DNA from: Monocercomonoides exilis PA203
Taxonomy: Eukaryota > Protista > Preaxostyla
Direction of reading: 5' to 3'
Length of the DNA stretch: 64,000 bases
NCBI GenBank assembly: GCA_001643675.2
Contig: LSRY02000060.1
Location: forward strand, 310,001-374,000
The notes under the pieces are model-generated. The model searched no databases and was not told the origin of the DNA. It saw nothing but the letters and a program-made list of their open reading frames with translations. Each line of letters opens with the position of its first letter. Within the stretch, counting starts at the first letter, position 1. Shown here piece by piece: positions 14,549-58,901 of the stretch. The position numbers and the translations under genes are program-made.

Positions 14549-14938
14549 TCAAAAAAAAATAAACAAATGCAATTATCATGACTTTTATGCTAAATTAAAA
14601 TTTCGCACCCATGTATTTTTCTGTGTTGTTCAATTTATATCTTTAAGAAGGGAAATAAAATTAAGCATGCATTGCCATTTTGATTTAAAAAGAGAATTTG
14701 CATATTCTTTCACTAAATAAATCGTGCCATATTATTAACACAAAAAGCGCAAAAGCCATACCTGTGCCTACACAATTCTTTCGTACACATGCATTTTTTC
14801 ACAACTATTAATGCAAAACATAGTTTCATTTTTTGTAAATTTACGTTGTAATGGGATTTTTGTGAAATCCAAAATTCTTTTGAAGACGTAGTTTAACATG
14901 CCATAATTAACAAAATATTTTTTCTCAAAAAGAAAAAT

Positions 14939-14939
<1 letters not shown>

Positions 14940-14988
<49 letters not shown>
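14940..14988. repeat. poly(T) tract, ~49 nt
   Basis: Directly visible, near the right end of the hAT. Confidence 0.9.
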
Positions 14989-14989
<1 letters not shown>

Positions 14990-15268
14990 GAAAACTGGTG
15001 ACGGACGTGACGATATTTTTTCTTCACGTCACCCAGGCTTATATTTTTGTCTAAATGTTTTTGTCTATATTTTCATCTCGCCCTTTTTCCCACGTCATTT
15101 TGGGAGGGCGAAGTTTTCACTTAAACCGCCCATAAATCGTGAACAATACTCATTATTTCGGAGCAAATCCTGTCTCACTGCGTTCTATCAAATAATGCAT
15201 GTTTGTTTTTGCAATCAATTTTATAAACATTTAAGATATATGTTTTTTCAAATATTTTTCGTAACTTA

Positions 15269-21863: not shown

Positions 21864-22449
21864 AAGGAATAGCCATTTTCTATATAACACAATGATTTTC
21901 ATTCTTCTTTTTATTTCTCTTTAAACAAAAAAAAAAAAAAACTAGTGTGATTTTTTTTGATCAAGTTTTACAAATAATATCCAAAAACTTATTAAATTAA
22001 TCAAACAAACTAATCAAAAAGTGAAAAAAAAAGATACTTAAGCTGTTAAACAAAGCTTATAAAAGGGAAAAAATTTTTTAAAGAACTTCAAAAAATGCAA
22101 CAAATTTCTTAAAATTAAATAATTATGCGTAAGATGAAATGAATGTTTAATTTCTTTGTCTTAAAGGCAAAAATCAAGTTTTCCATGCAGCTATGCAGCT
22201 TCACTGATTCAGAAACTGAGATTGTGTTGTACAGGAAACTACAATCAATGGGAACAACTGGTTCAATTTTGTCATTTCTCTTTTTATTCTTTATGTCAAA
22301 TGCAGTTAAAGTTTGCTTCTCAATCCACCATATCTCTTTCTTTTATTTCTACTCAACATTTCTAAATTCTCTTTTCGAAAATGCTGCTAATGTTATCTTC
22401 ATCCACATCCAACGCTTTCCCATCGTTTTTCTCGCAACAAAACACAAAA

Positions 22450-25400
22450 CTTCAAAAATTCCTGCAAACCTCCTCTTGAAACGCATTTTCCTTTTCACAA
22501 AGTTCTGCCAGTTCTTTGTGATCTAGGTGGTGAGCGAAGGAGGAAGAAGAGGAAGAGATAGAAGAATAAGTGTCTTGTGTTAACGAATCCCTTGTCGTTT
22601 TTGAAAAGGAGCCCTTGTTCGCCTTCATGCAAAACAGCACCTAAAAAATCAACTCGGTTGTTGGACATGGCAGAACAAATGTATCCTTGTAGTATTTCGA
22701 TAAGTTTATATTTCTCAGCTGATATTTCTCAAACATGTGGAGGATGAGGATTGGGTACTTAACATTAAGGTAATGTGTTGTGTGATGGAGCATCTGAAGA
22801 GGGAGAAGAATTCAGAGAATAGATTATTATGCGCACCAATGAGTCGACGAATTTTCTCTCGTGAAAGACAAAACTCATTGTGCGGAATAAATTCTACTCA
22901 AAAAGAAGGCACTTCTTTCTCTGGAAATTGCATGAGAGATGAAATGGTGATGAATGGAAGCAAAATTGAAGTGGAAATTCAATCGAAAACCGGAAAGGAG
23001 GAGCATTAAAAACAACGATAAAAGAAGGAGAAGGGATTTTTCTGGATTGAAGTTTTGATGCAGAAGAAATTCAGCTCTCTTTGATATTGTTTTCTGGATG
23101 CTCAGCAACAGTTGGGAAGAACATGTTTGTGACGAGCGAAAATACTGAGAATGTTGTGAATGCGGAGCGTTTTGCATTTGATTTGACAGAGAAAAGCTAT
23201 TTCTAGTTCAAATAAGACAAAACGATGATCTTTTCAACGGCTGAAGAAGAAAAATCCATTGATAAAACAAACTCATTTGCTCTTCCACATCCGTTCCGCT
23301 GTTCTTCAGAGCTTTCTTTTTTTTCTTCCTCTTTTCCTCATAATCATTATCAGGCTACGTTGCGTCTTTTGACAAGCGCTAATTCAGTTTCTGCTCTCAG
23401 CTGAGATTCCTTACCATTTTCCATATCTTCTCGAAGATTCATGAACTTATTGTTTTTTCGACTTTCCTATATCTTCTGTATTTTTCTCTTCTACAAACAC
23501 TGCCATCATATCACAAAAGCAACTAAATAATCTCCCATCAAAAGCTCGGATCTTTTCCACTTTTCTGTATCTCCACAACCTTATCCATGCTTGCTTCCAT
23601 TAACACCCCTGTTGACTCTCTTCCTTTTCTTCCTTTTTTGCTTCCCTTTCATTTGATTCTCTCGTCGTCACTCTCATCTCTCCCTATGGCAACTACATCT
23701 TTCACTAAACAAGCTACTCATTTTTATGCACAAAACTGTTTTCCTTCCGATTTTCTTCAAATCTTCCCCATTTTCTATCTCTTTTGCTTTCGGCAGCATC
23801 AGCAGCAATTAAACAATGGCATGCACAGCTCTTCCCTCCCTTGAAAGTGAGACTCATTCTGAACACTTTATCTTTTCCCTTCTGATCCCACTGCTCTCTC
23901 TCATACTCTCTCTCAGAGTCGTTTGGAAGCGCTTCATCGAAGCTTTCTGAGAAATCTATAAGTTCTTTTTAATTTGTTGTTTTGTGAGCGCTGTATATGA
24001 GCAAGAGTTTAGATTGTGGAATAAGTTGCGGCTTGGGAGAAGAAGAAGAGGAAGGGAATGAAGGAGAAGGAGCAAATGGTTGAGGAATTGATTATTCCCT
24101 CTTTCAAATACGTTTCTGAAAGAAGAAAATTATTCTTGTTGTTGAGGAGCGCGCTCAGTGACTCAGATATGGCAGTTCTTCTCTTCTCATTGGACAATAT
24201 TCCGCTGTGGCTGTTTTGCGCTGCCTTCTGCTGAAGTGGAGAAGCTGCGTGCGTTCTTCCGGCAGTAGGTGAAACATAAAATGGTGGGATCGGTTTGGCA
24301 TAAAATTAGTTCTGAGATAATCGATGGAGTCAGTTGCGAAGGTGAGTACAGGAAAGAACGCAGTCGAGACAAAGTGGTCGAATGTCCTTGTGTGCAAGGA
24401 GAAGACGGACATGAACACCAATCTTCTTCTTCTTCTTTTTCATCTCTTTCGTAACACTCTTCTTTTCTTCATCCTCTTCATCATCATCCTCCTCAATATC
24501 TTCTCCTGTTCTTCTTTATCTCAACAGCTGCATTCAGATTAAGCAAAGCACCAGCAGCTCCCATTTTCGCTATGTCAGTTGCCGTTGGAGACGCCAGGAC
24601 GCCAACAAGATTCGACCCAACACCCCAGCTCAGTAAACGACGCAGCAGCTCCTATTTCGTTACTGTTGGTTCCTTGTTCGCTTCATTATCCTTCTCGTTT
24701 CTCTTCTCCTTCTCCTTCTTCATCCAGCCCTCTTCCTTCAGTAAGCGCCTCGATGATTTCCGACGAGTTGTTCCGCACAATCGCCTGTGGCGAGTACATC
24801 AGCTCGGCCAGCTCGTTAAACAGCGCTTTGTCGAGAGAGCTGGCAAACAGCTTGAACGACTTGCTGGTAAGCGAGAGAAGGATGGAAGAAGCCTTGTCGA
24901 TGTATTCAGCGCAACGCGAGTACAGCAAGCGGAGGATGAGCTGGAGAATCCGGTGGCGCAGGAACACTGAGTGGAACTTGGCACCGTTGGTGATGAACTT
25001 GTTGGTCACACAAAGAGAAGAAGAGACAAGAGGATACAAGCGAAAACTGGATGTGAATATAATTGTGTGTTTGTGAATAATTAAATGTATAAGCGAAAAA
25101 GTGGGTAAAAAGAAGAAAGAAAGAAAAACTTGTGAACAAAATCTCAATAAATATTTTCTGACAAACCCTATGAAACTGATCAATTGCTTTGCAACATCGT
25201 CATTCAGCAAATAACCTTTATTCACTTAGCAAGACAATTGAAAAATCACTGCTATTAGTCCACCATCATAACTATTCATCATTTGAGGGTGAACAAAAAA
25301 TTTAAATAAAGATAAATAGTTGAAAAGCAAAATACAGATAAAAAAAAATAATTGAAACCATTAATCAAATATTTTTTATTTTACAGAAAAATTCAAAATT

Positions 25401-28400
25401 TCCATACAATTCTGGTTCGCCATGTGGGTCATTGCGTTTAGACCCCTCAGCTTGAAGATGTCGTCGAAGCCGCAGACCATTAACTGTTCAACAGGAAACG
25501 CACAGTGCAGCGAAGGTGGAACGTCCATCGACAGAAAAGCGCTACAAACGACACTGGAACACAGTTCAATCACATTCTGCCACTTCACTTTGAACGAACG
25601 CTCTAAGCTGTGCTTGATGGATGGCAGTGTTGGGGAGGGAGAGGAGGAGGAGAAAGAAGAAGAAGAAGAAGATGATGATGATGATGATTTGTTAGTGGAT
25701 GCAATCGGCGAGAAAGTGATTGCGTTTCGATAAGTTGCTGCTGATTATATCTTGGATTTTTGATTTCTGGCTGATAAGCCGAGCAAAGCGTGATTTCAAT
25801 TGACACGGGCTTATTCTTCCTTTTATCCCATTCTATTTTTTCTTTAGCTCCTCTTTCTTTCTGAGCCTTTCTAATATCTCTGCCAAATCCATATTCTTCT
25901 TCCTCCTTTTCATTTTTCTCATTATCGATGCATTTATCTGTCAGATACAACAATCCCTTTTCATCTTTATCACTCACAAACTCATTTGCACTCCTCTTCT
26001 CATCCTTCTTCTACTCCTTCTCCTTCTCCTTTTCACCACCCAGCAGAATCTCCTGGCTAGCCACATGCGCTGCATAGTTCAGAAGGATGCTCTGTGGCTC
26101 AAACACATCCCTCGTGTCTGAAACGCTCCTTCTCGCTAACACACCTGCATTGCCCAATCTGCTCTTCCCGAGAATCGCACGAGGGATGCGCAATAAGAAG
26201 GAGGAAATAGAAGAACAAGGAGAGGAAGAGGAGGAGCTTGGGTGAGTTGTGCCAAGAGATTTCTGTGTGAGTGAAGAGGAGTCTGTGACAGGAGATGAAG
26301 GAGTGAATGGCTTTGGCGGAGTACCAATAAGAACAGAATGGGCAGACAATTGTGCGTGTGGCAAGGGAGAAAAAGGAGCAGCAAATTTCTCAGAGGCTGT
26401 GACGTTTTGAGTGAACAGTGGGAAGATGAGAGTGTGCCGACGAGTGAGTAAAACGTCTGCTGATGTTCATCCATCATCGCTTCCTTCTTCTCTTCCCCAA
26501 TCCCTCTCCTCCTTTCTGTTGTTGACTGCGCTAGCCTTGTGTTGAAAGCGTCAATTTGCGATGTGCAAAACTCGTTTTTCTTCTTCGTCTTCTTCTTCGC
26601 TTTTGGCTCTTCCTGCTTTCTTCCTTTCCTCTGCTCTGCGCTCAATTTGCTTCCGAAATCCGCCTTCTTTGCCTCTTCCATTTTAACATGCAGTGCTTTC
26701 TCTTCGCTTCTTGTCGATGTCATAAAGCGAGCAGATGAATGCAATGTGCCTCGAAGCTCCTTCCCTCTTCCACCGCCATTTCTCATGCGATGCCCATTCA
26801 GTCCATTCAGCGCAGCTTGCGCACCAAATCTATTCGAAGCTCCAAAATATTGCAGGGTGTGTGCTGCAGAAGAGAAGAGAAGTTCAAATGCACGTCCAGC
26901 AATCCTAAAGAAGGCATCTACAGCGATGATGTTGTTGAAGATAGCCTAACCAAATGAGATAATTTTTTGTATGGATTATTCAGTTATTGATTGAAAATCT
27001 TGCTCACATTCGAATGTTGCGGATCTGATCCAATATGAAGAGAGAGGACACGTCAAAGAAGAAGAAGAATGTGATGAAGAAGCAGGAAAAGAAGGAGAAG
27101 AGGAAGAGGACAAAGAGGAAGAGAATGAAGCCTTCTCATGAGACAGTTCAGGAAATGCATCAGAATGCAACGATGGCTGTACTTCTCTTTTCAAATCGCG
27201 TTGCGTTCTTGCATGCCTTCTCTCTCTGCCTGCACAGCTGCCTGAATGCATTCCATTCCTCTTGCAAAAACTGCCTTTGCTGGTGTCTGCACAACTGTCT
27301 GTCTCTTTGAAAATATATTTTGGCTGTCCTGCTCCTTTCTGATCTCTCTCCCAATCGCAGCAATGGTTGGCCTGATGACAACAGGATGCAAATGTTTTCA
27401 ATTGTTCCATTAACTTTTTCTTCCACTGCTCAATGACGTGAAAACTGCTGTATCATCAGAAGAATGAGAAGAATAACAAGTCAACGAAGAAGAAGATGAA
27501 ATATCCGATTAATTGTGATGTGCACAATAAAAATGTGTTGTATCAGAGGAAATGGAAGATAACATTAATAATTCCTCTTCGCTTTCACCTTCTCTCTCCT
27601 TCCTCTTTCTCTCCCCCTTCTTCATCTTATCTCCATCTTTATTTCCATCACTTCCCTTCTCTCTGTACGCACGCCTACTCCAAAACCCCTCTTCCATCAG
27701 CGCTTCTGTCTCTTCGCTCTGTACAACCCACTCCTCACACAGCTTCCTGCTTTCCACATGATACTTCGGTGAGGCCTCTGCTTCCACTTCGTTCAAAAAT
27801 GTCATTCAAACAGACAATACAATACGATCACATTGGCACTCCCCTCCCCTTCTTCTTCAATTTTCCCCTTTCCCAACACTCTTTCGTGCACTGCTGTCAC
27901 AACATCTCTTCTTCTCGCTCTTCTCTGGAATCTTCATTACAATCAGCCTTCCCATTGCCTCCTCTTCATCTCTCTTCCATCTTCCTTATCATCATCTCCT
28001 CGATATGCTCTTTTCGGTTGTTTCATCGCAATCTCCAAAATGCACCTGAACTTCATCAGCTTCTCATAGAGCTAGTCGCCACACGCCTCTCCAACGAAAT
28101 ACACCGCCAGCGCAGACAGAACACATGGCATCACCACATTCGGCATATACATCACATTCACAAAAAAAAAAGAGCAGATAATATTATGTACTTCACAGCC
28201 TCCAGATGCTCTGCTGCCACATGAGCTCAAAAGATCGTGGTGCAATGTAATTGACCAGATGCTGCAGGGTGCAGCGCCTCTCCACATACACGCCCCATCA
28301 GCGACCCTGTAGCAAGCAAAGGTATCATTATACCTGCTGGCACATTTAGTGGCATCGACAGCGGCTGGAATACATGATTCACAACCAGGCACGCGCACGT

Positions 28401-29880
28401 ACTCCGCAGCTCAGTCCCACATGCCTGCAGCCCAACATCAGTCGGTATATCTTCCTGTGGTAGTGCCTTTAGCTGCGCTGTGTCGTCTGTCCCAATGACT
28501 ATCCCTGTAGAGAACACAAACGAAGAAGTCGAAGAAGAGGCAGAAGTGTGCGCAAATGTTTCTATTCGTCGGGCTTCGATAATGACTAAAAAAAAAAGAA
28601 GATGCATAATTTCACAATAAAATCAAAAGAAAATACTAAAAAAAATTATTGAAAATATATTAATTCATGCCTTTGAATGCTTCAGAGCCAACGTTTTGAA
28701 TTGAAACAAATTTATTATGATCGATTCAATTTTCTTTCTTCGCTTCCTCTTTCTATTCGGTTGAGTCACAATCATTAAATCCCAAGACAACTTCCCTGAT
28801 CAACTTCCTTCCTTCATTCTTCCCCCCCTCCTCCTCCTCCTCTCTCTCTCTCATTCACACTTCTCACTCTTCCCAATGAGCTGCAACAAATATCTGCTTG
28901 TGAATACATTCACAAAATGAAAAGAAAGCAGCTGCTTCGAGGCAAGCTGTTACAATACAAAGTGGAGGAACATGCAATCAATGAGGGGAAAAATGTGAGA
29001 AGGAAGAGAGAAGGAAGGATAATGGAAGAGTGATGACAGAAGAGAAACATGCTGAACGTGCTCTGATTCCATGCAGCAGCCTCAAATGAAAAGAATGGAG
29101 GCATCTCATTCGCCAGGCAGTGCAGCTCGAAACTGCAATTGAAGAGATGGGCAAACAACAGAGAAGATGCAGATATCCGGAAAGAAGAAGAGGAGGAGGA
29201 ATTGCAGCAGAAGATGTGCTTGATAGCCATATGTGTGCTACACAAACAGAAACACCAAATTGTCAATACAAAGTTTGCTGTTTGCAACAATTACAAGATC
29301 TTTCAGCAGTAAAATCCAGTTGCAGTTGGGCAGAATGTTGTTTGATATCCGAAAAGGATTCAATAATTGAATGTCTCGTTGTTGGCGTTTCTCCACTCTT
29401 TTGAAACAAAAGCGGAATCAGAAATTGAATATCGTCGCTTTCTATGTTTGCCTGGCGCAGTCTGAGCAACAGGAAAACCTTATAAATAAAACCGATATTT
29501 TGGTAGTCTCATTTTTTTCATTGAATTGTTTCCATTTTTTGTGATAAATATCCTTCCCTTGATATTGCCAGCCACTTTCCTTGCCAAAAAACTGCTCCTC
29601 CTGCCTAACATTCCAAAATGCTACATAATATTGTGCAGATTTTGTCCTTCACAGAATTCCATCCACTTTTTGTCTTCATTCAACAAAACATCAGTAGAAT
29701 TTGTTTTCACATCTTGTTCAAATAAAAATCATATATCTTGCGTAACTTCATTTATTTCCCAATGGCTATACAATAATCTGCTCCATTCTCATCGTATTGC
29801 TCTCCAAAGCGGAGATTTGCTATTTGACAGACAAGAAAAGTTCCTTTTCTTTGAAAAGGAAGCAAACAGAGCAGTTTTCC
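22450..29880 (-). pseudogene. Decayed large multi-exon gene(s), Ser/Glu/Lys-rich, function unknown
   Basis: GC-richer blocks separated by AT-rich intron-like gaps; minus-strand ORF fragments (e.g. 24686-25225, 26136-26786, 28227-28607); many stops. Boundaries approximate. Confidence 0.35.
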
Positions 29881-29914
29881 AATATAATGAAAAAATTGTA
29901 ATATTACAATAAAA

Positions 29915-30377
29915 ATTAAATTATAAAAAGTATTAGCAAACTGGTAAAAAGTTGGAAAAGTGAGTGGTTTTAAAAAAATGAAAGAAACAAAACTCCAGCT
30001 TCAATCAGAACCATATCTTTTTGAATTTTTGAATATTTATTAAAAAAAAAACAAATATCAGAAAAATTTTGATTTTTTGTTTAATAGTTATGTATGTGAT
30101 AAGAGTTAGAAAAATGTTTTTTCTGAATTTTAAAAACTTGTATTCATGGAAAAAACTTCTGTTTTCCGCTTCAAACAATGAAGATGACAGAAGGATCAGA
30201 ATCTCGATGCCACTTTTTTTTTGTTCAAAATGGTTTATTTCATCGATTTAACTTCATATATTACTAAAAAACTGCTTTTTGAAATCTGCAATTTTCGCCC
30301 TTTAGCGCGTAATTTTTTGATCTTTTTGCCCTCGAAAAAAATAAAATATAGGGTCGGATCCTTTTTTTCATTCAAAA
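29915..30377 (+). repeat. Left terminal inverted repeat (includes putative TTAA TSD)
   Basis: Reverse complement of 37939-38401. Confidence 0.95.
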
Positions 30378-30772
30378 TTGACAATGTTGAGAATAGTCGA
30401 ATTTTTGAAATTTGTGATTTAAAAATCGTATACGGACAGGTATCATATAAATTTTCTGAAAATAAATTTTATTTGTTTTTTTAATAGCAATGTTAATGTT
30501 ACTGATGTTTTCATATTTTTCATTTTTTATTTTTTATTTTTAATTATGATACGTTTTTTTGTAATTTTGAAGGATTTGTCATTTCAGAAGAAATTCATTA
30601 TTCAAATAAAAAATATTTCATTCATTTTAAATGATTTCTTGAGAAAACTGTTAAAAATCAAACTGAAAACATCAAGAGAGGAAGTGAGAAAATTGAAAAA
30701 AGAAAAATTCGAAAATAAAAATCGCAAGGAAAAAAAAGTAAAAATTAAAGCAAAAATAGACAAAGAACAAAA

Positions 30773-32667
30773 TCATTCAATCATTTGGTTTATTCTATAA
30801 AAACAAATTGCACCATTCCATCCTTCATTTGCCATTGCTTTCCAATATGCTTCATTGAAATGGGAATTCACCTGAGATATAACTCCATCATTGCACTCCA
30901 GTAGACTAAGCTCCCCAGTCGATTCATCTCTTCCATCAACAACAACTGCTATAAAATGACCAATAGGCATAGGTTTCATCGAATGAAGGACATATCCAAA
31001 GAAATTGTAATCAATCCTCGGAAAGAAAGAAAACTCATGTTTCAGTTGATTTGTTGCATGTGACGTCACCACCATCGATTTCGGAGTGGATCCACTTCCA
31101 TGAAATGTGATAGTTTTGGGCGGTTGCATAACAGGGGAGTTTTCCTTTGAGCTATGATAAATTGCAAGGATTTTTGGGAACCTGTCAATTTGTGTCCAAT
31201 ACAAAAATGAAGTCTTGCACCCACAATAAGCATCAACACACGGTTCCTCAGTTGATAACTGATCGGTTGCAGACAATGACAAATTCAACCCCTTCACAAT
31301 CGATGGATGCATGATGGTGAAATAAAACGAAGGATTTTGGTTATGAACACGAACATGAGAACACTTCGCACACAGTTTGAATGAAGATTGCTTCACTGTG
31401 AAGTCTTTCTTGATATTGCACCCCTCCAAAAATGCATCGTTCAGAATTGCTTCATATGCTGTTGTGATCCCTAATGGATCAGATTTGCTCCCACCATGTT
31501 TTTGCACAAAATTCATAAATGCTGGAGTTCCCCACACTTTGTTTGTCACAGTTCTCCCTCTGATTGCACTGAAAAGTCTTCTGAAAATATACACTCCTCC
31601 ACGTCTTTTTTTGATATCACATTGCACTCCAAACGATGCCAGACATTGACAAATAGAAGCTAAAGCACATGATGATCCAAAATTTATCAACTCCCTCCCA
31701 CAATTCACCAACACCTGAACATATGAACGTGATTCTTTTGGTAAAGGATGAGCTGGAAATAGAAACGAAGGAGGAAATTGAAAAAAGCTACTCATTTGTG
31801 GAACTGTTGAAAGAACAGAATAAGGATTTCCTAATGCTTCCATTGAAGACTGTTGCTTCAAAGCAACAAACAAAAAAATAAACAAATAATTATTGATTTG
31901 CCTGTCAAATTGAATCAGGCAATTTTTGAAAAAAAATAAAAAACCAAACCTCTATTTCCATTTTCATTCCTCCTCCTTTAATATCTGAACATTTTTTATC
32001 TTTGCTCATTTTTAAACATTCATCGCTCTCCGTTTCTTCATCGTCGCTTTCTTCTTTTTCAGACATTTGATCAACCGCTTCATCTTCGTCTGAAGATATT
32101 ACACTGTAACTTGATGAAGAAGATTGCTTCCGAAAAATTGATTGAATTGAATTCTCTTCCTTTTTATCCTTCAAACATTCACCCAAACAGTTGATCTTGT
32201 AATTGAAATCTTGTATCAGTTCTTGCTGAGAAAACCACTCAGTCAGACACAGCAGCATTTTTTCTTGGATATACGGGTTCGATTCATTGAACGGGAGCTT
32301 CAATTTTTGGACAATCTTATGTAATGGTGCTTTTTTATAAACAAATAATAAAAAAATTAAAACATAATAAATATCAAAATAAAATATTATTAATTACAAA
32401 ATACAAAGAAAACAAAGGAAAAACTAAAAGCAAACATCCATAATTTTTCATCAGATTATTCATTAGCGAGTTTCCGGGGATCAATTTGATAAAAAATTCG
32501 AAGAGGACTTTATTTGCATGATCAACTGACATATTTCTGAAAAAGTTCGATAGCATATCCACATCGTTCATTATGCTTTGCTTTCTCATGCTTGTGTGCG
32601 CACGGGAAAATCGAGAACCAGACAACCTCCCACTTGACATTATGAATTTCCTTTTATTGGGTTTCAT
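30773..32667 (-). CDS. Transposon gene A: N-terminal transposase-like helical domain + acidic linker + USP (peptidase C19) domain; 3 exons, ~565 aa, apparently intact
   Basis: Predicted exons 32667-32436, 32329-31950 and 31855(or 31849)-30773 with GTTTG...AG introns join in frame. Cys box 'LINFGSSCALASICQCL'; CxxC 'CAKC'; His box 'YNFFGYVLH...GHFIAVV'; 'CNDG'. Confidence 0.8.
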
Positions 32668-32890
32668 TAGATTTTCACTAAAAATTTCAATTTGAAATAT
32701 TTAATTCACATTTATATTTAAAAAAAATAATAAACTCTCTGGATTTGGAAAAAAATCCAAAATCCTTTCATTCATCGAGAAAAAAATAAATTCAATTTTT
32801 TCTGTTTGAAAATTAAAAACAATGACGATCACAAAATGACAATATTATCATGTGTCTGATTTATGCCGGAAATGATAAATAACGACATAT

Positions 32891-33020
32891 GTACTTTATT
32901 TATTGGAAAAAAACTGTTTTCTGCTCCTTGCACTTTCCCCCCTTTAGCACTTTTTTTTTGATCTTTTTGACTCCTTCGAATTTTGAATTATGGATCTGAT
33001 TCTTTTTTCATTGAAAAACA
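32891..33020 (+). repeat. Degenerate, internally deleted third copy of the TIR
   Basis: 32891-32930 resembles 30135-30172, and 32931-33020 resembles 30290-30377 (CCCTTTAGC..TTTTTTGATCTTTTTG...GG.TC.GAT.CTTTTTTCATT.AAAA). Confidence 0.7.
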
Positions 33021-33322
33021 ATATTATTTATATTTTGAAGAACTTTATATATGAGAATGATATATTTCATAAGACAAGTTCATTTATGTAATGAATTTTT
33101 CAATAAACCTTCAATTTAAGAATTCTTTAATTTTTTCAAATTTTTTTCTGATAAGAAATTTTTAAAAATTTTTTCTATAATTCAAATCACGTTAAAAAAA
33201 TTTTTTAACAATTTTGGAAATAGTCAAATAATGAAAAAATAACAATACATATTTTTTTAAATAAAAAAAATTTTTTTTAGAATAATTGTGATTTTCCATA
33301 AGAAAATATTAATTAGAGAAAA

Positions 33323-36300
33323 ATGTCGTTTTCAAAACGCGAATCGACATTAAATTCTCGATGCAATGTTATGTGGCAAGAAATCAAGCGCATCGGTGGA
33401 GATGACGTGGATTCGTTGCTTGTCTATCTGTTTTACAACTATAGGCAATCATCTTCAGTAATTGATGATTTACTGAAGTCTTTGAATGGTTTGGTTTTAT
33501 ATTTTTTTGAATTGTGTTGAAAATATTATTTTCACTCTCTGTTATTTTTTTCTTTTTGATTTGTTAATTATTTATTTTTTTTTAAAACAGAATATCACAC
33601 AAAGCTACTGGTAGACCTGTCTGTAGTGTACAACAACGCTCCGTTGCACACTCAGACAACAATGCTACAAGCGCTTTCCCGCAACACATCATTATCCGAT
33701 TTACAGGACTATGGATATGATGTCACAGAGGGAAAATTTATTTACGCGAAGCAAACGCTAAAAAAAACCAAGGATTAATCATTACGCCTCAGAAACCTCA
33801 CCTTCCGTCTTGCAAAAGTGGTTTGTATTTATTTTAATTTTTTTTTGAATAATTTTCTCTGTTTATTATAGGCTTAAATGAACAGGAATGGGAAAAGGGC
33901 AATAACTGGATGTTGGCTCATTCAACTGAAGCCTCAACTTCTCTTCAGTCAGCAAAGAAAAAGCAGCGAGCTGAACCAGATTACGCCAGATTTATTGACG
34001 AAGCAGCTTGGGATGAAGAAATTATTACAGAAAATTCTTCTACAAATAAAAAACAATCTTCTTCTTCTTCAACATCATCTCAACTCAATAAAAATTTAAA
34101 AATTATTTCAGAAAAAAATTCTCCTTCTTCAAATTCTTCTTCTTCTCAAGCTGTTGATGCTCCAATCAACACTCCAATAAGGAGAGAAAGGGGTTTTACA
34201 AATAATCTAAATAAAAATACAAATCACAAACGACACTCTTATCCATCATTAATTCCCATTCACAAAATATTCAAATCAAAAACTTCTTCTTCACAAATTT
34301 CAATAACAAAAAAATTAAAGGATGAAATAAATATTTCATCATTTTAAAATGATAATGTGTTTGTAAGTGAGCAATTAGTTGATTATGCCACTTCACCCAC
34401 ATTAATTCCACCTCAAGCATTTCAAAATCTCTTTTCTTCATTTTCAAAAGAGAATGACACTTCAACACTTCAACAACAAAGCATTCAATCTTCAAAAAAT
34501 GAAATATCTATTCAAAATAATTCTTCAAAAAATACTTCAAAAAAGAATGCAAAAGAAAATTCAATAAAAAATCATTCTCATTCTCAATCTTTCTCAAATT
34601 CATTAAATTCTTCAAATAAATCATCACAAACAGCAAAAGGATTGCCTAACTTAGGCAACACATGCTATTTGGCTTCTCTTCTTCAATGCTTATCTTCAAT
34701 CATGACACGCAAACCATCTTTTCTCAAAAAACAAACAGCTATGAAGAACACATCTTCGCGTGTTATTAGTGTTTGTCAACAATTGGCTAAAGATGGAACG
34801 GCAGTGCGTTCGTGTGTCCCATCTCTTATTGACAAATGGGAAGATTTCTGAGACCACGGCAAAAGGCAACAGTGAAATGTTACAGAGGCATTTGACAATC
34901 TTCACCGACTTCTTCAAAAAAATGAGTTGATAAATAAGGACACCTTCAATCCTGTTTTAATCACTCATTTCAAATGCCAAAAATGCCAAAAAATTTCATC
35001 ACGTTTCAACGAAGTTTGTAACAATGTTGTTATTAATTCTTCCTCGACTCATAATGGATTATCTTCTCTCTTTGCAACTGAAGTTTTGGAAGGAAAGAAT
35101 AGTGTCTATTGTGATGCATGCAAGGAAAAATGCTGTGCTGCTCGATGGGAGGAAATGGCTGCATTTCCAGATGTGCTAGCCCTCTGTCACGAATGCACTG
35201 ACTCTGCAAGCTCTGCTCCTTCAAGAACATAACTGATGGAAACAGATCGCGTTAACCAGCGCACTTTCTGCAAAGTGTTTTCAACAGAAAGTCTTCAACA
35301 TCTTCAAAAAGATAATCAAGAAACCATCATATATCATCTCGTTGGGCAAATTCTTTTCAAGCGTTTGGATCTACAGAATGGACATTACATCGCTGTGATC
35401 AAAAGAAAGAGCGTTAACAACTGCATATGGAATATCTGTAACGACGCTGATGTGACAGAATTGAACATCGAAAATTGGACAAAGGCATGGAAGGATCTTT
35501 ATGCTCAAGGTTTCACTCCGTCACTTTCATTCTATATCAAAGAAAAAGCCAAACCAACTTTTTCATCAATTCAATTTGGTGGTTCTTCTTCTTCAGAAAC
35601 ATCAAATTTGAACAATTTAAATCACATATCAACAACAACAGCAGCACTAACTTCGACAACAACAACAGCAACTTCATCATCATCATCATCATCATCATCA
35701 TCGTTTATCACACCACTACATCAAACTTCTTCCATTCCACAACTGTCATCATCAATAACAACTAACTATGGATTGGAAAAACTTAAAGAAAGAAGAAAGA
35801 AAACGGGCATCTTTTCTCCCAACGAGAAAAGAGTGATCTTCAAGCCCAAGACTAAATTGTGGAAAGAGTTTTCAGAAGAAACAAATATTAAAGTTTCTCT
35901 TTCCCATTTCTACAAACTCACCACCAACTTCTCTAAAGCTAAAAGGCGCACAGATCTCTGTGGCATGTGTGAGAAGTTGGACTATTTGGAAAACAAATTG
36001 ATATCATCTCAAAACAAAAATGGACTTTCTTCTGCAGAGTTTCAAACACTCAAACTTCTTCGACAACATCGACTTGTTGCAGAAATGCAACGAAAACATT
36101 ATCAATCAACTGTTAACAATCTCAAAGAGGGAGAAGCAGTCTTCGTCTTCGACTTCAAAGAGAAGTGGAAACTGCCAATCCGAAAGAACCAACTTCAACA
36201 AGAATTCTTTAATTATCAACAGGTTTCTCAATTCACAATCATCTCCCTTCAAAAAATAAACAATCAACTAATTAAAAGAACTTTCAACTTCTTCTCCGAC

Positions 36301-37068
36301 TGCCTTTCAAATGATCACAGATTTGTTATTGAGTGTCTGGAATCTGTGATCAAAAGACACTTCTTCACAGACACTCACACTTTTAAGTTCTTCTGCGATT
36401 CAGGTCCACACAACCGTAATCGCTTCCTTCTTCACTTCATCCTTTCAAAACAATCAAAACTTCTTAAAAAGAAAAATACTCAACTCAATTTCTTCGCTGA
36501 GCATCATGGAAAAAATATCTGTGATAGTGAATTTGGTACGTTAGTGAATGCAATCGACAACAATCTTTCGACTGAACACATTACCACCCTTCATGATTTG
36601 ATCAACTTCTTCGAAAACAATATGAACACTTCGACATCAGCTTCTTCAACTTCACAATCAAACATTTTCTCAACATCATCATCAAACTCTTCACCATCTT
36701 CAACATCTGTCAATAACTTTGAGCATGAGAGGTACTTTGAAGAATATGTACCATCTCAGCAAATTTCATGGCCATCTCTGTCAGTCCCTCACATGAAGGA
36801 CTATTTACACTTTGAGCGCAAAGGCTCATTTGTCTGTGCTTCAGCTGTTGGATATCTTCCTCAACGCTCTCTGGTTGCCCTCGAATCTTCGACAATTAAA
36901 GAAAAGGTTCAACGTTCAAGAAAGTCATTTCACTCTGATATCACATCATCAAACTCTTCTCTTCTTTCTCAATCTTCTCAAGATCTTCTTTCAAGGAGAT
37001 TTGAGCTTCTTCTTGAATCTTCTTCTATTTGTGAATCTCAAAATTGTTCTATTGGTGTCCCCTATTAA
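33323..37068 (+). pseudogene. Transposon gene B: Sola-like DDD transposase with an inserted USP domain; 3 exons, 4 in-frame stops and 1 homopolymer frameshift
   Basis: Exons 33323-33488, 33591-33820 and 33872-37068. Exon 3 is a single frame (ORFs 33910, 34357, 34927, 35236) broken by TAA 34345, TGA 34849, TGA 34873 and TAA 35230. USP: 'GLPNLGNTCYLASLLQCL', 'QQxNVTEAF', CQKC/CDAC, 'GHYIA', 'CNDA'. Transposase: 'RTDLCGMC', 'FDFKE', 'FCDSGPHNRN', 'FFAEHHGKNICDSEFG'. Confidence 0.85.
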
Positions 37069-37075
37069 GAAACTA

Positions 37076-37206
37076 GTTGTTGTGTGTGCTTAGCTGGTCC
37101 TCTATCGGAAGGGTGCTGGACATGACTGTTCGTATTAGATATTGCAGCCTTCGGGCTGCTTTATCCGGACCTGGATACGACGAACAGCCTCCCAGGTGCA
37201 CAACAG
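37076..37206 (+). ncRNA. Candidate structured RNA element downstream of the transposase stop codon
   Basis: GC-rich island with nested helices: 37078-37087/37196-37205; CTGTTCGT 37126-37133/ACGAACAG 37180-37187; GCAGCC-TTCG-GGCTGC 37144-37159; TATCCG/TGGATA 37162-37177. Confidence 0.45.
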
Positions 37207-37938
37207 TTAGAATCCGATTGTTTTCTTGTGCTTTTTGTCCCTATATTGTCCCAATAATTAAATTGGTTATTTTCCCGCTTATATTTGTATTTATCAAGAT
37301 TCATTAATGTAGAGAGGTGTGAGGGAATTCATTGATCTTTGAGTGAGGTTTTTGGAAGGGAGAGTTGTTGAGAGTGTGAAATGTTGTTTTATCATTGTGT
37401 CTGTCTTTTTTCTTTGTTGGATTTGATCTTTTTGAGTCAAAGAGAGAGAAATATCAGAAAGGGGTGAGTGGATGGAAAACAGAGGGAAAATAGACAAGTT
37501 AGTTTTTGAACTTTTTATATAAGAATTCTTTTTTGTTTGGAATTGTCTTTGATACCATGAATTTGTTGAAATAGTGCTATTTCTTCTTATATTTTTCATT
37601 GTTCAAAATTGTTGATATTTAGTTGATATTTGGTGATTGTTTTATGATTATGTGATGGAATTATGTTTTTTGAAAGTTATTGAATTTGATTAGAAAATTT
37701 CTAACTGTTTTCAATTTTTTAAATGATTAATATCATGAAGTTCTTTTTGTTTTTTTATGTCATTTTGATTGGTGGATGATTGTTATTTTTTGACGTATTT
37801 TTTTTAATTTCACTCATTTTTCTACAATTTTCAGAAAAACTCAATAACAAAAAATAAACACATTTTTGTAACGACCACTCATCTAATCATTCAGTAATGC
37901 ATGAAAAATGAAAAAATATGATACATACACAACAACAT

Positions 37939-38401
37939 TTTTGAATGAAAAAAAGGATCCGACCCTATATTTTATTTTTTTCGAGGGCAAAAAGATCAAA
38001 AAATTACGCGCTAAAGGGCGAAAATTGCAGATTTCAAAAAGCAGTTTTTTAGTAATATATGAAGTTAAATCGATGAAATAAACCATTTTGAACAAAAAAA
38101 AAGTGGCATCGAGATTCTGATCCTTCTGTCATCTTCATTGTTTGAAGCGGAAAACAGAAGTTTTTTCCATGAATACAAGTTTTTAAAATTCAGAAAAAAC
38201 ATTTTTCTAACTCTTATCACATACATAACTATTAAACAAAAAATCAAAATTTTTCTGATATTTGTTTTTTTTTTAATAAATATTCAAAAATTCAAAAAGA
38301 TATGGTTCTGATTGAAGCTGGAGTTTTGTTTCTTTCATTTTTTTAAAACCACTCACTTTTCCAACTTTTTACCAGTTTGCTAATACTTTTTATAATTTAA
38401 T
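37939..38401 (-). repeat. Right terminal inverted repeat (includes putative TTAA TSD)
   Basis: Reverse complement of 29915-30377. Confidence 0.95.
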
Positions 38402-38599
38402 GTTTGTAGTAATGCTATTATTTCTCAAATATATTTTTAATTTACGGCTTTATTTAAAAAATATGTCAAAATACATTCAAAATCTTTATATTTCATGTTT
38501 GTTTGTTCAATAGTATCTAATAGTTATACTGTTGGCCTGCATTTATCTTGTGTTACAACTTCAATTTGATAAGATTTTTTTTATTGGGGAATTCTTAAG

Positions 38600-41500
38600 A
38601 TTCTGCTTTCAACCGAACCTATTTTCTGGCGCTGATTGAGTTCACTCTGTTGCTCGTGCGCCAACAAGAAGAATGAAGTATCATTCATTCATTCATCTTC
38701 TTGGCGAGTTGCAGCTATTATTGAAGAAGTGACATATTTTTTATGTGAAAGTGCTTTCACAGCGCTAAGTTACAAACGCAATGAGACGGGGAATTCAATT
38801 GTTTGTTGGCGGAAGACAGCTGCGAAAGAGCAAGAAAGGTAAAAGAATGCTCATGTTTTATGCAGGACAAGGGAGATTTGTTTTGCAGAAACAGAACTGC
38901 AGAGAAAGGAAACGAACGAGAACAAAAGATGGAGGTAAGATAAAGGAATGAGAACCAAGAGAGGTAGAATGGAAAATTAGAAAGGTTATTTTGTTCAATC
39001 TATTTAATTCAATCTTCTTTTTTTTTTTCAATTTTGAACTTAATAATTATAATTTCAAGATCCTTGCATGATTTTTTATTATTTTTTCTCTGATTCAGAT
39101 ACAGATAACATTAAAACATGGCTTATTTTGATGAAGCAGACGCGTCTGTTGAATATGCTAGTCTCAGCATTGCGAGCAGAAAACAGATGGTGCGGCGTTG
39201 GTGTGCGTCCATTTGGTTGGTGATGGGCTGAAACATGGCATGCCGAGAGTTGATAGTCGAAGAACAAAATGCAGGAGTTGATTTGGCCGTTTGAGTGGAA
39301 GATGCAGGAGCATCGGCAGAACCTGGCGCGAATGCGGGAGTTTGATAAGCCACGAAAGACATAGCGGACAGCTGGAGCAGAAGAAGTGGTGTCGCCGACG
39401 CTGCTACTGCTGAAGCCGCGGGGGGAGTTCTATAAGGAATCGGAGCTTTCGTGAGTGACTGCGGTGCATAAGAAGAAAATTGTCTGGGAAGATAACAAAG
39501 TGTTAGTGATGCTGCTTGAGTGCAAGAAGTGTGAGCCTTGTGAAGTTGTGTTAAAGATACGGGAGACATGACGGGAGCTGAACTGAAAGATGGGAGATAA
39601 GAATGTGAAGAGGATGGAGGTGGAGATGAGCAAGAAGATGCTTGCGAGTCAGTAGATGGAAGAGAGAAAGTGGAAGAGAGAGAAGAAAAAGAAGGAGATG
39701 AAGACAATGAGAACTGCAAAAAGATGGAGGATGAGAGAGAAGAACGAAATTTTGTTCAGCGGAGATAACATAGAAGGGAAATTGACGTCGCCAATTGAGA
39801 GAGAAAGAGAAAGAGGAAATAGAGTTGAGCACGAGGGTTCTTTATAGACAGAGAAAGATGGCATTTCCACAAGCAAAGTCGATAGAATGATGCATTTGGA
39901 GTTATTTGATCAAGGCAGAACATCTCTTGTTATTCCTTCCTGCGAAGAATGGCTGCTGTCAGGAAAATTAGTGGAACACAAGGACTACTTGGGTTTTATT
40001 TCGCAATGAAGATAAGCAGAGGTGGGCAATACGAACTCAATGAGAAGGTGCTAAAGAGGAGATGGACTATTTTCTGTGGAGGACGAAGAGAACGAAGAGA
40101 GAAGGAAAAGCGAGCTGAGAGTGCTATATGGCAGCCCGTCAGAAGCATCGAAGTCTGCTTCGAAGAAAAGCAGACGTGCTTGTGATACGTCTTCAGTGAT
40201 TTTATCATTATCATCTTCCTCTTCTCGGAGCAGCAAGACGTTTTTCCGCGATCCAAAGGATGAATCCAAAATGACAACGAAAGGGAAGAAATGCAGCAAA
40301 GATGACATGGTTCTATTCCAAGAAGACGAAGATTATTTCTTTTGGTTTAAGAAAACTACTTCAAACAAAGCTTTGACCTCATCAATTTCTCAATCATCAT
40401 CCTCTGCTTTGTCTATCTCTCATGTTTCTTTATTGATCCCTCCACAATGTTTCAACAAATACGCAAAGGATCCACGAAGCAGCATTCATGCTTCATTGGA
40501 AGGGATGAAGAGGAGGAAAGAGGAGAAGAAGAATACAGATTTTCTCTCGCTGTATTCGTCGCTGACAAGCGAAAGGATGCTGACTCTGAAATCGGAGGGT
40601 GACATTGCGTCTACTGATGACAAGTTGTTTGAGGAGGAAATGAAAGATGTTGATGTGGTGAAAGGAGCAATGAATGAAGGTGAGACTGAAATTTGACGAA
40701 AGATTGAGGCGAATAAAAGAAAGGAAGCTGAGAGAAGAAAGAGAAAGAGAAGCAGAAAGAATGAAAAACTTGCCTTTTAACCAGCAAAATGCAATTAACA
40801 CAACGTTAAATGGACCAAATCAGACTCTTCAGTCAACGCTCCAATCAACTTGATCAGCATCCTTCTCTTCTTCTCCTTCCTCCTCTTCCTTATTTTCATC
40901 ATCTCCTTCTTCGTCATCCACACAAATTTCATCTGATAACAATCAGATTGTCAATGCTTTGCCTTCTTCACCATCATCACTTTCGCCTCCTCTTTCAATA
41001 TGCTCTTTATCTCCTTCTTCCACCAGCACCCCATCTCCCACCAATCAAATGTGGCATCCTGTTCCTTCTTCCTCTCTTCCATCTTCGCTTTCTTCTGCCT
41101 CACAGCGTCCGTTCCCACTTCGTCACTTTGCTTTCCTGAGCCAAAATCGACGGCTAATCCAAACCACATCGAACAAATTGAGTTGGAGAAAGCGATATAG
41201 CCGAAGATGGAGAAGATGCAGAAGAAAGAGGCAGAGAAGGAGACAAAGGAGCCACTGGAGGAAGAGAAAGGAGTTTGTCTTAAATCTGAAAAAGATGAAG
41301 ATTGAAAGAAGTGAATCGAACTTCAAAAGCGAAGCGAACAAGAGGAAGGTGTTGATGAAGGAGCATTTCGAATAGCCTATTGTTGTTTGTGTAATGAAGA
41401 TTCAGTTAATTTGAGATGATCTATCTTTTGATCGGCAGGCAGTTTATTTTGGAAGCTGTGCAGATGTGTTTCCCAATAAAAGCTCATTTTTGACTGTGGA

Positions 41501-44460
41501 AGAAGGAGATGATGACATTTCAGAAAACTTGTTATTTTCAAAAGAACAACAAAAGAAAAAGAAAAAGAACAAGAAGAAAATTATGCTCCAAAAGAACATA
41601 CACATTCGGAGCAAAAGCGAAGTGAAAATGCAAATATGCTTTAAGATGTTTGATTCAAAAACTTATTCTTTTTCTTCTTCTGATCCTTATCAGAAAAACT
41701 TACAATTTGTTAGTTTTCTTTGTATTTCACAAGATAATCGTCAAACACAGCAAAAAAAGCGTGAAAGAAGCTTCTTCTTCTCCTTCTTTAATTTCTTCTG
41801 CTAATAGTGGTGAAGCTGAAGTTTCGCAGCCTTATTTGCCATTTCCAAGCACATCTGCTTCTTCTTCTTCTTCAAAGCCTCACTCACATTCTCATTCCTC
41901 AAAGTCATCTCATTCAAAACCCAGCTCATCAACAACTACCTTATCACCTTCCTCAACAGCTGTACCAACTGCTTCATCATCATCACCTTCTTCTTCAACT
42001 TCTTCTATTTCATCTTCTTCATCAGCATCTCAAAATACATCTGTTATCAAACAATTTTTTCATCCCCTCCAGCTACTTGCACAGACACACAAGAAGCACA
42101 GCGATCACACCCTCAAACCGATCTCTATTGCGCATCCACGCTCAACCCTCTCGCAAAATGCTGCGGAAATTAAAAGACAAAAGAGGAAGCCAGCAGCAAG
42201 TCAGAAGCGAAATTCATCTCTTTCGTCTTCTTCTGCAAAGACTCAACTGACTATTTCAACATTTTCTGCGCATTCATACGCAGTTACATATTCTTCTTCT
42301 TTGTTTTCTTCCTCTTCCTCTTCTTCTGTTTCTCAAGAACCACCTTGTTCGCCCCGCCCCACCTTTCCTTCTTTTCTCCACCACTGAGTCGGCTGTGCTG
42401 AGACTTGCGGGCAGAGAAGCACGATGGAAGACAGCGTGTTGCTGCTGCCCATTGATGGATGAGGCGTAGAGAAGCTTGTGTGCGATGGAGAAGAGGGGAT
42501 TTTGGCTCGCATACTGAAATATCCGCAGGAGCTGAGGTTTGGTGAGAAAGGAATGAAGGCACTGGAAGACAGAGAGGATGAGATCTGGGCAAGGATGATG
42601 AGAGAGAAAGAGAAAAGGAAGAAGGAAAGAATGGAAAAGGAAAAGAGAGGAAGAAAAGAGAAAGAAAAGAAGAAGAGGATGATAAATCCATAAATAAGCT
42701 CAATACAAACATAGAAGCAAGTAATGTTGAGATTAACTTACAAACGTTGCCTTCATCTTCTCTTTCGTAGTCATCATCTTCTTCTTCATATTCTTCAACA
42801 GAAAGTATTAAAGAACAGAATGTGAATGCACACACAACAAATGCAGCTGATGATGCTTTTCTTCAACCTCCTCTGAATATTCCTCCTCCTCCTCCTCTTT
42901 CCACTCAAGCTCAATTCAATGCCTCTGCTCTCTTCTCAACTACTTCTTCCATACTCCCCTATGCACCTCTTCTTCTTCTTCTTTTTCTTCTTCTTATCCT
43001 TCCTCTTCCTCTTCTTCGTATTCCCTTTTTCTGCTTTCTCTTCCCCATCCTCTTATTTTCCCTTCACAACTCGATTCATCTTCATCGTCTCCTTCTCCTT
43101 CTTCCCCTTCTTATCTCTCTTTCTCTCAGAGTTAAGAATGACAGATTTCGAGGAGTGTCATTTCATCTGTTTCTTCCTTAACACGAAAGCCTGAAAGCAT
43201 CGATACGAAAGGCAGAGGAGAGAGATGATTCTTTATGCAGCGCAGAGTGAATTAACAGTTGAGGAGCCACCAAGATGCGCCTGGAAAGATGCCGCCACCT
43301 CCTCATTTGAACGAGGCGATCTTGAGTGCTCTAACAGATCAAGCAGATGAGGTTGCAGCTGGCAGTGAGGGAAAATAAACAAATGGAAAGGCTTTAACTG
43401 GTGAGCTGGAAGCTGTCGGCATGCACACTCCAACAGAGCTGAGCGAGCGAGATGGCAGTGAAGACGAAATGAATCGTGCTGAAGAAGCTTATTGACTGAT
43501 AAAACACAGCGAGATGAGAATGACAACACTGAAACCTCCAAAGGCGAGATTCGTGTCGATGAGATGCTCGATGGAGCAGCTGGAGCCATCGTCGAGCAGG
43601 AGCAGAGGCTGGCAGCACTGAGGACGGAGAGGTTGGTGTCGGAGGGGAAGAGGGAGGAAGCGGGGAGAGCACGAAGAGCAGGGCATGTGAAGTGGAAGGA
43701 ATAAACAGATATGTTGGAGGGGCGAAGGGTTCTTCAACAAGAACAAATGAGGGTGGGGTTGAGGCGGACGAGCTGGTCAGCCGCGGAAAAGAGGAAGGAG
43801 TACACAGCTAGTTATCCGTCGAGGAGGGAGAAGAGGGAAGAGTGGGCTGATCCAGAGGGAGTTTTCTATTGAGCGGCAGATGCAGAGTACAACAGTGGAA
43901 AGGGAGATGCAGGTCTCAAGCAGGTAGCTGCACTGGCAGGCAGAGGTTCAGGTGTCCTGCTCGACGAACATTTAGTAGGCGCGTAAGAATGTGATTAAGG
44001 GGAGGAGTCGACATCGATGTTGGGGTCTGTGGGAGGAGTGGAAGGCGAAGTGGAGGTTGAAAATGAGAGTGGGAGGTGGGGGCCGGCTGTGGTCAGCACG
44101 AATCCGCTGAGCTCATCGATGGCAAACACCACGCAACCCAAGCCATGTGTCTGTGCCTGGACTCGCTAGCCTCCTCTGGACTCGCTGCGATTTTTACACA
44201 TCCCCCGTCTCCGCTCCCCTTCTCCTTACCCCCAATCATACACACACTGCACTCCACCACGCTGCTGCTTCCGGTGCACTCGATCTGAGAAAACATTGCG
44301 ATCGACACTTCGCCCAGTGTTTCGAACTCGCATAGAACAACCCTCCAAAAGCTGATTGTTGTCAGCAAGAAAAACATCCTCTCCACTTTCTTAAATCACC
44401 ATTGCATCCTCATTCAGGGTTGAAACTGAACCAAGCGGGGCTGTTGAAAAATGCAAAGAA
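38600..44460 (+). pseudogene. Decayed large Ser/Glu/Lys-rich low-complexity gene
   Basis: Plus-strand low-complexity ORF fragments (40076-40696, 40959-41375, 41650-42387) with many stops; no domain recognised. Boundaries approximate. Confidence 0.35.
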
Positions 44461-45241
44461 ACTTATTCACATATTTGTCCAGCTTTTAAAGTGATTTGCT
44501 AAGAGAAAGAAATAGCGCAGAGAAGTATATTTAGAAAAATTGTTGAATGGAATGTTCACCAAGCAAATTAGGCAATGCAAAAAAAGAAAAACAGATGATA
44601 AAAAAGATGTGTTCATAATAGTTGTGAGCTTTTTTAGTGAAAAAAGTGAAATTTTTCTTATTTCTTTTAAATTTTTTTTTTTTTTGATTCGAACTTTGCA
44701 ATTTTCAAAAATAACTTTGATCAATCTATTTAAATAACTTCTTTAAAGTATTATTAACTTCCAAGCCAATATCAACTTCTAATTGTTGTATATCTGATAA
44801 ATATCGAGTTTAACTATTATATTTTTCATTTGTGTTTTTGAAAATTGTTAATTTTCAACAAAAGTTTTATGATCTTCAAAATTAATTTTAAAATTTCTTT
44901 TCAATAATGTTATTAAACTGTTTTTTTCTTTAGAAATAGTTTAATAGCGTATTATTATCATGTTATATTAATGATTAAAATAATGTTTTGTTCTGTTCAT
45001 TGAAGTTTCTATATTTTTTGAATAATTTTTTATATTATTTTCTAAATATGGAATAAAAACAATTGGAAACAAATAAATATCAACAAATAAATAATAATAA
45101 TAATATATTGATCTATATTTTCGCATTATTTGACAAAATTATTATCTTATCAACCCCACCCTTAATGAAAATTTTTTATGATCAAACGTCGGAATTTTTT
45201 ATGATATCAAAAAAAATCACCCATATTGCTTTTTTTCCTAT

Positions 45242-58898: not shown

Positions 58899-58901
58899 TG
58901 A

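Follow-up and report, generated by a model that had tools for sequence, protein, structure and literature searches.

The question raised by a 64,000-nucleotide stretch of the Monocercomonoides exilis PA203 genome (contig LSRY02000060.1, positions 310,001 to 374,000; hereafter the window) is what kind of mobile element it holds and what that element gains from ubiquitin-specific proteases (USPs). An 8.5-kb block of the window contains two divergent genes between long inverted repeats, i.e., gene A on the minus strand and gene B on the plus strand. A sequence-only reading had assigned a USP/C19 domain to both, which was borne out, and had taken the block for a transposon with 463-bp terminal inverted repeats (TIRs) and TTAA flanks. 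Here, the block was recognized, with high confidence, as the middle part of a giant Sola2 transposon of the cut-and-paste type that carries cargo, occupies window positions 21953-45222 and has ~28-bp TIRs and 4-bp AT-rich target-site duplications (TSDs) in its intact copies. Around this core the full element measures ~21-23 kb, and sizes in the family range from 15 to 23 kb.

All close homologues of genes A and B came from M. exilis, assembly GCA_001643675.2, and ten further loci were retrieved via their proteins. Six of them (L005-L010) carry both genes and four (L001-L004) carry gene B only. The true ends were recognized as sharp stops of short segments shared by otherwise different loci, and they are formed by a ~28-bp TIR beginning with GGGTGA. 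Two loci were complete elements, i.e., L002 (19,122 bp, ATTT on both sides) and L004 (20,850 bp, ATAT on both sides). The joined flanks of L002 matched window positions 50984-51816 without a break, at 87% identity over 838 bp, which represents an empty paralogous site. Further copies and an empty site, which the sequence-only reading had proposed to look for, were thus found. The left ends of L005, L006, L008, L009 and L010 lie in five different flanks; therefore, elements with both genes have moved at least five times. Target sites of the window family read AWWT at 8 of 10 distinct insertion sites and ANNT at all of them. The element termini read GGG...CCC; for Sola2, termini of 5'-GRG ... 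CYC-3' were reportedly described by Bao et al. 2009.

In the window, the right terminal region (44627-45222, minus strand) was ~67-75% identical to the right ends of L001-L004. It closes with a ~28-bp TIR at 45195-45222, identical at 28 of 28 positions to the left TIRs of L001, L002, L008, L009 and L010. The adjoining ATAT (45223-45226, plus strand) is the right-hand target-site tetramer, as judged from the paired TSDs of other copies, and its partner was lost with the left end. On the left, a remnant of the subterminal region was found at 21953-22377 (plus strand), 72-80% identical to positions 188-611 of the L009 and L001 left ends. The first ~187 bp, including the left TIR, are missing, and no left TIR was found across the 64-kb window. 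Since its left TIR is lost and gene B has four stops, this copy is dead.

The copies might instead be segmental duplications or assembly chimeras, as the patchy identity to sister copies along the element and the use of a polished long-read assembly could suggest. However, the copies lie in different flanks and their homology ends at the TIR, the TSDs occur in pairs, and there is an empty site; segmental duplication was rejected on these grounds. The two arms of a copy also have copy-specific variants in common, at 20-25% divergence from the other copies, which polishing would not make. This origin is considered extremely unlikely. L008 and L010 were 97% identical across 15 kb. In L007, an 8.3-kb insertion (1356-9663, with gene B on the plus strand) separates the left inner repeat from gene A and has pieces resembling the arms of L001, L002 and L004; this copy is truncated on the right, and a further left end lies at 18871.

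The 463-bp repeat reported earlier does exist, as positions 29915-30377 (plus strand) pair with 37939-38401 (minus strand) at 463 of 463 bases, but it is not terminal, the true ends lying 7-8 kb farther out. Nor did the TTAA flanks stand. TTAA (29916-29919 and 38397-38400) sits inside the repeat, not outside it, and TTAC occupies its position in one arm of L006. Similarity to the window runs past the repeat in 6 of 6 other copies with both genes (0.8 to >6 kb on at least one side), and in L009 it spans window positions 23619-43555. The flanks beyond the repeat are common to all seven copies of this kind (window and L005-L010). The outer edge of the repeat is not fixed, with shifts between copies of 6 bp up to 1.25 kb (L005), and the copies without gene A have different, unrelated internal repeats of 180 to 1413 bp.

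For the shared flanks, the shifting edge and the internal TTAA, the 463-bp repeats as termini and TTAA as TSD were rejected. An 8.5-kb Sola3, Kolobok or piggyBac-like transposon with these features, perhaps once mobile and now nested, would agree with the perfect repeat, with TTAA near both outer edges, with a motif in the repeat that is also found at the true left end, and with the central gene of L004, which is inverted relative to its own element ends. Against this, beside the flanks, edges and unrelated repeats described above, no TIRs of several hundred bp were found at the termini (a trait of Sola3 and other long-TIR elements), and the true TSDs were not the TTAA of Sola3, Kolobok or piggyBac. 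Moreover, the 463-bp repeat lacks a GGG terminus and the transposase is Sola2. Such a unit is therefore judged very improbable. Within one copy the repeat arms were 96-100% identical, versus 75-99% between copies, which points to homogenization arm to arm by gene conversion. A third, partial copy of the internal repeat was detected at 32817-33016 (plus strand), between the start codons of genes A and B.

The assignment to Sola2 comes from the transposase. A search with its core gave 739 relatives, and one of them (P0106, E 2.5e-18) reads identically to Sola2_PPa-1 of PMC3627910, supplement 3. Nine invariant alignment columns (D, CxxC, H, D-FKE, D, HGK, D) are all present in two published Sola2 proteins, and the DDD triad is shared with these references. 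What had been proposed as a candidate new transposon system is thus a member of a published group. The predicted structure of the core, with a predicted local distance difference test score (pLDDT) of 92.6, matched the DDE/D enzymes IstA, Mos1 and Hermes and integrases. Sola2 elements of PMC3627910 have 4-bp AT-rich TSDs, TIRs of 12-22 bp and lengths of 10-15 kb. In M. exilis, TSD pairs were ATTT (L002), ATAT (L004) and AATT (L011, of a second family described below), in addition to the empty site, and the TIRs were short, ~28 bp in the window family and 22 bp in L011.

The AWWT target preference followed by the window family is a hallmark of Sola1 (PMC3845634), although some Sola2 share it; hence the group was assigned by the protein rather than by the TSD. 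The transposase motifs matched the Sola2 references in a comparison set without a Sola1 reference, and the transposase tree held one named Sola2 reference, on a long branch. Pfam and PDB searches with the core gave no family for the window protein, while 5 of 50 relatives had a match to DUF7869. The transposase was not found in scanned contigs from viruses and metagenomes. The TIR pattern had 36 matches in metagenomes, none of which extends further or encodes a relative.

Gene B (33323-37068, plus strand) has exons at 33323-33488, 33591-33820 and 33872-37068. In the window copy it is a pseudogene with four in-frame stops (34345, 34849, 34873 and 35230), the last three in the USP domain, and with a likely -1 homopolymer slip near 33760 in exon 2. 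The Sola2 catalytic region (35842-36630, plus strand) was found by homology and a structure model to comprise a CxxC-H motif and an RNase H fold, with D36151, D36397 and D36523 as the DDD core that the sequence-only reading had noticed. Upstream of it lies the USP domain (34636-35544, plus strand; Cys 34663, His 35383, Asp 35443), flanked by two Ser/Thr/Asn-rich linkers. The USP was present in every transposase copy of the window family examined, its triad was invariant in 11 of 11 copies, and in four of the ten other copies (L001, L006, L008 and L009) a single open frame of 1048-1134 codons encodes both USP and DDD. Open copies with both genes lie on contigs LSRY02000004.1 and LSRY02000008.1. 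Exons 1-2 match the N-terminal region of USP-less Sola2 relatives. From this region to the CxxC motif there are 52-63 residues in ten relatives versus 659 in gene B. By this alignment evidence the USP is a ~600-residue insert in the transposase, with the N-terminal helical region on one side of it and the zinc/RNase H core on the other.

Profile searches assigned the domains to C19, as the sequence-only reading had expected. Pfam UCH (PF00443, curated cut-off 23.9 bits) was hit at 30 bits by the Cys-box piece of gene B and at 27.5 bits by gene A. A nine-copy profile of both USP domains matched only USP-fold chains in PDB, the best being USP21 (E 1e-7), and an Atlas feature search gave UCH clusters at 0.95 for both. 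The Cys box with its oxyanion Asn, the His box, the Asp/Asn and the zinc-finger ribbons of USPs were recognized, and the Cys-His-Asp triads were found at the places predicted earlier in both genes. For the thumb-palm-fingers fold, the model had a pLDDT of 35; sequence profile and language-model features point to USP. Among Atlas matches of the gene B USP (P0007:20-335), compact Nucleocytoviricota USPs came out on top, tied with eukaryotic ones, which is a lead to a donor and no evidence of transfer.

Gene A (30773-32641, minus strand) has three predicted coding exons (~32641-32436, ~32333-31950 and 31855-30773), each of which was searched on its own. It encodes a second USP domain (30776-31735, minus strand; Cys 31669, His 30958, Asp 30889) and no transposase core. 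In the part searched, it is 100% identical to the NCBI model MONOS_18286. At least 12 database proteins belong to gene A, eight of them in one 90% cluster, on eight contigs. Gene A was confined to one subfamily, in which at least five insertions are independent, and its triad was unchanged in 7 of 7 copies. A single-sequence PDB search with gene A gave no useful match. Its three-exon layout resembles that of gene B, and exon 2 weakly matched the Sola2 N-terminal profile (7.4 bits; 3 of ~500 shuffles scored higher), while exon 1 was not significant. Gene A may be a coreless derivative of a USP-transposase gene, which these likenesses only suggest.

Selection has kept both USPs, to judge from substitution ratios and invariant residues. 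The ratio of nonsynonymous to synonymous substitution rates (dN/dS), taken as pairwise Nei-Gojobori means over related, partly recombined copies that are not independent tests, averaged 0.21 in the gene B USP, 0.06 in the core and 0.37-0.48 in the linkers. Gene A gave 0.18-0.24 between subfamilies at dS >1. The catalytic Cys, His and Asp are invariant in all 18 USP domains (11 of gene B and 7 of gene A). A second M. exilis family, represented by L011, was 43% identical in the core and had no DNA similarity to the first; its USP sits at the same position and the USP piece scored 27 bits with Pfam UCH, over the same cut-off. The L011 element is 15,140 bp long, with 22-bp TIRs starting with GGG and an AATT TSD. 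The USPs of gene A, gene B and L011 share 21-24% identity with one another, so the association of USP and transposon is old. A one-off capture was rejected, because the USP is in all copies examined, under selection, and also in L011. The concern that other copies might lack the USP genes was thus not confirmed for gene B, and the proposal of a DNA transposon family that stably carries a USP/C19 domain was supported.

DDE/D transposases work by cut-and-paste chemistry. The DDD transposase would bind the ends, excise the whole 15-23 kb unit and insert it at ANNT sites, mostly AWWT. In M. exilis, non-homologous end joining is absent and homologous recombination is present (PMC6759080), so the excision break would be mended from homologous templates. 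Such repair may account for the mosaic make-up of the copies, their exchanged cargo, the single flipped core and the perfection of the internal repeats. The USP is likely an active protease. Fused to the transposase, it would strip degradative ubiquitin chains from its own protein, raising its steady level or its lifetime on DNA, and gene A would do likewise in trans, perhaps on another substrate. The odds are about even that shielding the transposase from proteasomal degradation is the main task of the USPs. The Helitron deubiquitinases (DUBs) of the VTD type are active and prefer K48/K63 chains, and their authors proposed a transposase-protecting role (PMC9741609). Taken together, a giant Sola2 element whose USPs mainly remove degradative ubiquitin from the transposase is the favoured reading, held with moderate confidence.

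Several findings weigh against it. All TSD pairs observed belong to copies that lack gene A, as the retrieved DNA of copies with both genes stopped before their right ends. The Gln box of gene B is altered, i.e., QQNV versus the usual QQDA, and gene A has no Gln box, so its activity or substrate may differ. The structure model of the gene A USP failed (pLDDT 35). No USP was found in transposase relatives outside M. exilis, including the nearest one (P0022) and 148 other best hits, which move or have persisted without it; thus the USP is not needed for Sola2 chemistry. Relatives of the USP domains themselves were not found outside M. exilis either, by a search that required shared words and similar length.

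The altered Gln box also suits the idea that the USPs are tolerated passengers at a permissive loop, or are retained because they bind ubiquitin, help folding or have some other non-catalytic role. Long low-complexity inserts lie upstream of the core in P0022, P0023 and P0040 of the same clade, and any insert within an essential open reading frame (ORF) has to stay in frame. On the other hand, the USP is more constrained than its linkers, its triad never changes, it was retained in two families of 43% identity, and the free-standing gene A is equally constrained at dS >1. Little credence is given to this idea. An insert upstream of the core was also observed at residues 288-450 of P0029, a Sola2 relative that comes from the assembly of a sequencing run. 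It looked OTU-like by eye (DGxC, WG, HY), and Pfam and PDB gave no confirmation. If true, it would be a different DUB class at the same transposase site.

A 14-nt motif, AAAAAGATCAAAAA, links the internal repeats with the element ends. In the window it lies at 30314-30327 (minus strand), at 37989-38002 in the right arm, and at 32955-32968 in the third repeat copy; three occurrences compare with 0.03 expected, although these three are homologous to one another. It was found at +25 in 8 of 9 left ends examined and in 20 of 20 inner-repeat copies. Within a repeat core of 46% invariant columns, it is the longest invariant run (15 columns; the next is 7). As a bare repeat-to-end match it was borderline, and one unrelated AT-rich locus equalled it. 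The simplest reading is a candidate transposase-binding site. Binding to the internal repeats, one of which lies between two promoters, may serve autoregulation, a tentative idea whose chances are somewhat under even.

The motif between the two promoters bears also on another role for the same element, in which the USPs act on histones (H2A/H2B) or on repair factors such as PCNA at the ends and thus ease silencing or steer repair. The USPs would be tethered to element DNA by the transposase N-terminus, with gene A as a dedicated anti-silencing factor. Within the transposase, the USP lies in the half that binds DNA, exon 2 of gene A has its weak N-terminal match, and a role related to repair was proposed by Bao et al. 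for the OTU/Ulp1/C19 domains of transposons (PMC2836005). However, that match is weak and exon 1 gave none of significance. The chromatin or repair role is rather unlikely. More doubtful still is a two-protein ubiquitin-editing module, in which a coreless transposase-derived USP-A would be guided by the motif, found at the left end and in three internal repeats of which one lies in the shared promoter, to element DNA and would erase host ubiquitin marks. If true, this would be sequence-specific anti-silencing via deubiquitination, which is not described for cut-and-paste transposons in the literature searched. Compared with these, protection of the transposase is preferred.

Known systems place limits on what is new. 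Sola2 elements DFa-1/2/3 of Dictyostelium fasciculatum and PPa-1/4/5 of Polysphondylium pallidum (PMC3627910) have the same transposase motifs, short TIRs and TSDs of ATAT, AAAT and ATTT, and they are large (10-15 kb), carry an accessory gene and vary in their internal parts. A separate Fanzor gene makes up their cargo, whereas that of M. exilis is a USP inside the transposase plus a second USP gene in one subfamily. The M. exilis elements are also larger (15-23 kb) and have internal inverted repeats around the central genes.

USP/C19 was not known to the sequence-only reading as standard transposon cargo, but precedents exist. In PMC2836005, the Trichomonas vaginalis protein XP_001314237.1 is cited as transposase_11 plus peptidase C19. 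By that description it too is a metamonad polypeptide with USP/C19 and a DDE transposase in one. Its transposase is IS4/IS5-like and not Sola2, so an independent USP capture is likely in Trichomonas, and the description names no second USP gene or giant architecture. UCH accessory DUBs were reported in two Helitron2 subgroups (PMC11417382), and VTD and OTU in Helitron2/Helentron (PMC9741609). These are likewise transposon-borne DUBs, including Pfam UCH, some elements have two DUB domains, and their VTDs were shown to be active on K48/K63/K11 chains (PMC9741609). Unlike the M. exilis elements, they are rolling-circle elements with RepHel, without TIR/TSD and without a DDD transposase. Ginger1 and Mutator (Ulp1/OTU) transposases (PMC2836005) are fusions of a ubiquitin or SUMO protease with a cut-and-paste transposase; theirs is OTU or Ulp1 and C-terminal, whereas the M. 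exilis protease is of the USP class and nested internally. USP cargo in transposons is thus already known. New are the USP class in Sola2 and its capture into the middle of the transposase. No paper was found that deals with USPs in Sola elements or with Sola2 in M. exilis, in a search whose coverage left most subscription journals and Repbase outside.

Ubiquitin and SUMO proteases have been captured by many unrelated transposons, and their benefit to transposition is still guesswork. The M. exilis family offers a clean test, with intact copies, a protease that is disabled by one Cys change and USP-less Sola2 relatives as controls, and its sister subfamilies with and without gene A allow the second USP to be compared. 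It brings a testable case of ubiquitin removal by jumping genes to a gut protist without a mitochondrion. Giant Sola2 elements also suggest a route of reshaping for a genome without end joining. Since 35% of the M. exilis genome is listed as unclassified repeat (PMC8767320), cargo-carrying elements of 15-23 kb may explain part of it.

Between the block and the ends, both arms appear to consist of decayed host-like cargo. In the left arm (22378-29914), positions 23619-29914 were 81-97% identical to L009 with 33 indels, 7 of them multiples of three, and Pfam gave nothing above cut-off for three left-arm ORFs. The right arm (38402-44626) has patches shared with L005, L006, L008, L009 and L010, with mostly frame-breaking indels. 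Pack-MULE and other Pack-type elements carry host gene fragments between conserved ends, and the long inverted repeats of Galileo expand and become homogenised through gene conversion. When compared with Pack-type elements, the arms vary among subfamilies and look decayed, and those of L011 have receptor-like pieces, by eye only. Unlike these systems, the cargo-laden elements of M. exilis are autonomous and their long repeats are internal, not terminal.

Other features were observed around the element. After the gene B stop, the stretch at 37050-37260 is GC-richer and conserved among copies; as a structured RNA it folded no better than shuffles (z = -1.16) and had no Rfam match. An intronless ORF of 784 residues with a GTPase domain (PF01926) lies at 19509-21863, followed by an A14 run at ~21927-21940, at the point where the element breaks off on the left. 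A retrocopy or some other insertion may thus have taken away the left TIR. Just beyond the right end, a broken hAT-type transposase with a weak hAT dimerisation domain match was found at 45433-46751. At 54297-59300, a DIRS-type retrotransposon was recognized. Its ORFs encode a reverse transcriptase, an RNase H and a tyrosine recombinase, and it has an internal complementary region besides its inverted terminal repeats. Split inverted repeats of the same pattern at 7526-7626, 11270-11370 and 15107-15191 indicate that 7526-15191 is probably a decayed DIRS element broken by another insertion.

In L011, a second perfect inverted repeat of 320 bp (1299-1618 and 19568-19887) lies outside the 15-kb element, and inverted repeats of this kind, long and perfect, seem to be common around transposons of the M. 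exilis genome. A TIR-like start, GGGTGATTATTTT, was found at window positions 62616-62640 with ATAT before it, and a short similar end lies ~110 bp upstream of the L008 left TIR. Ends of this type possibly belong to a related Sola2 family or to a family of MITEs (miniature transposable elements with inverted repeats).

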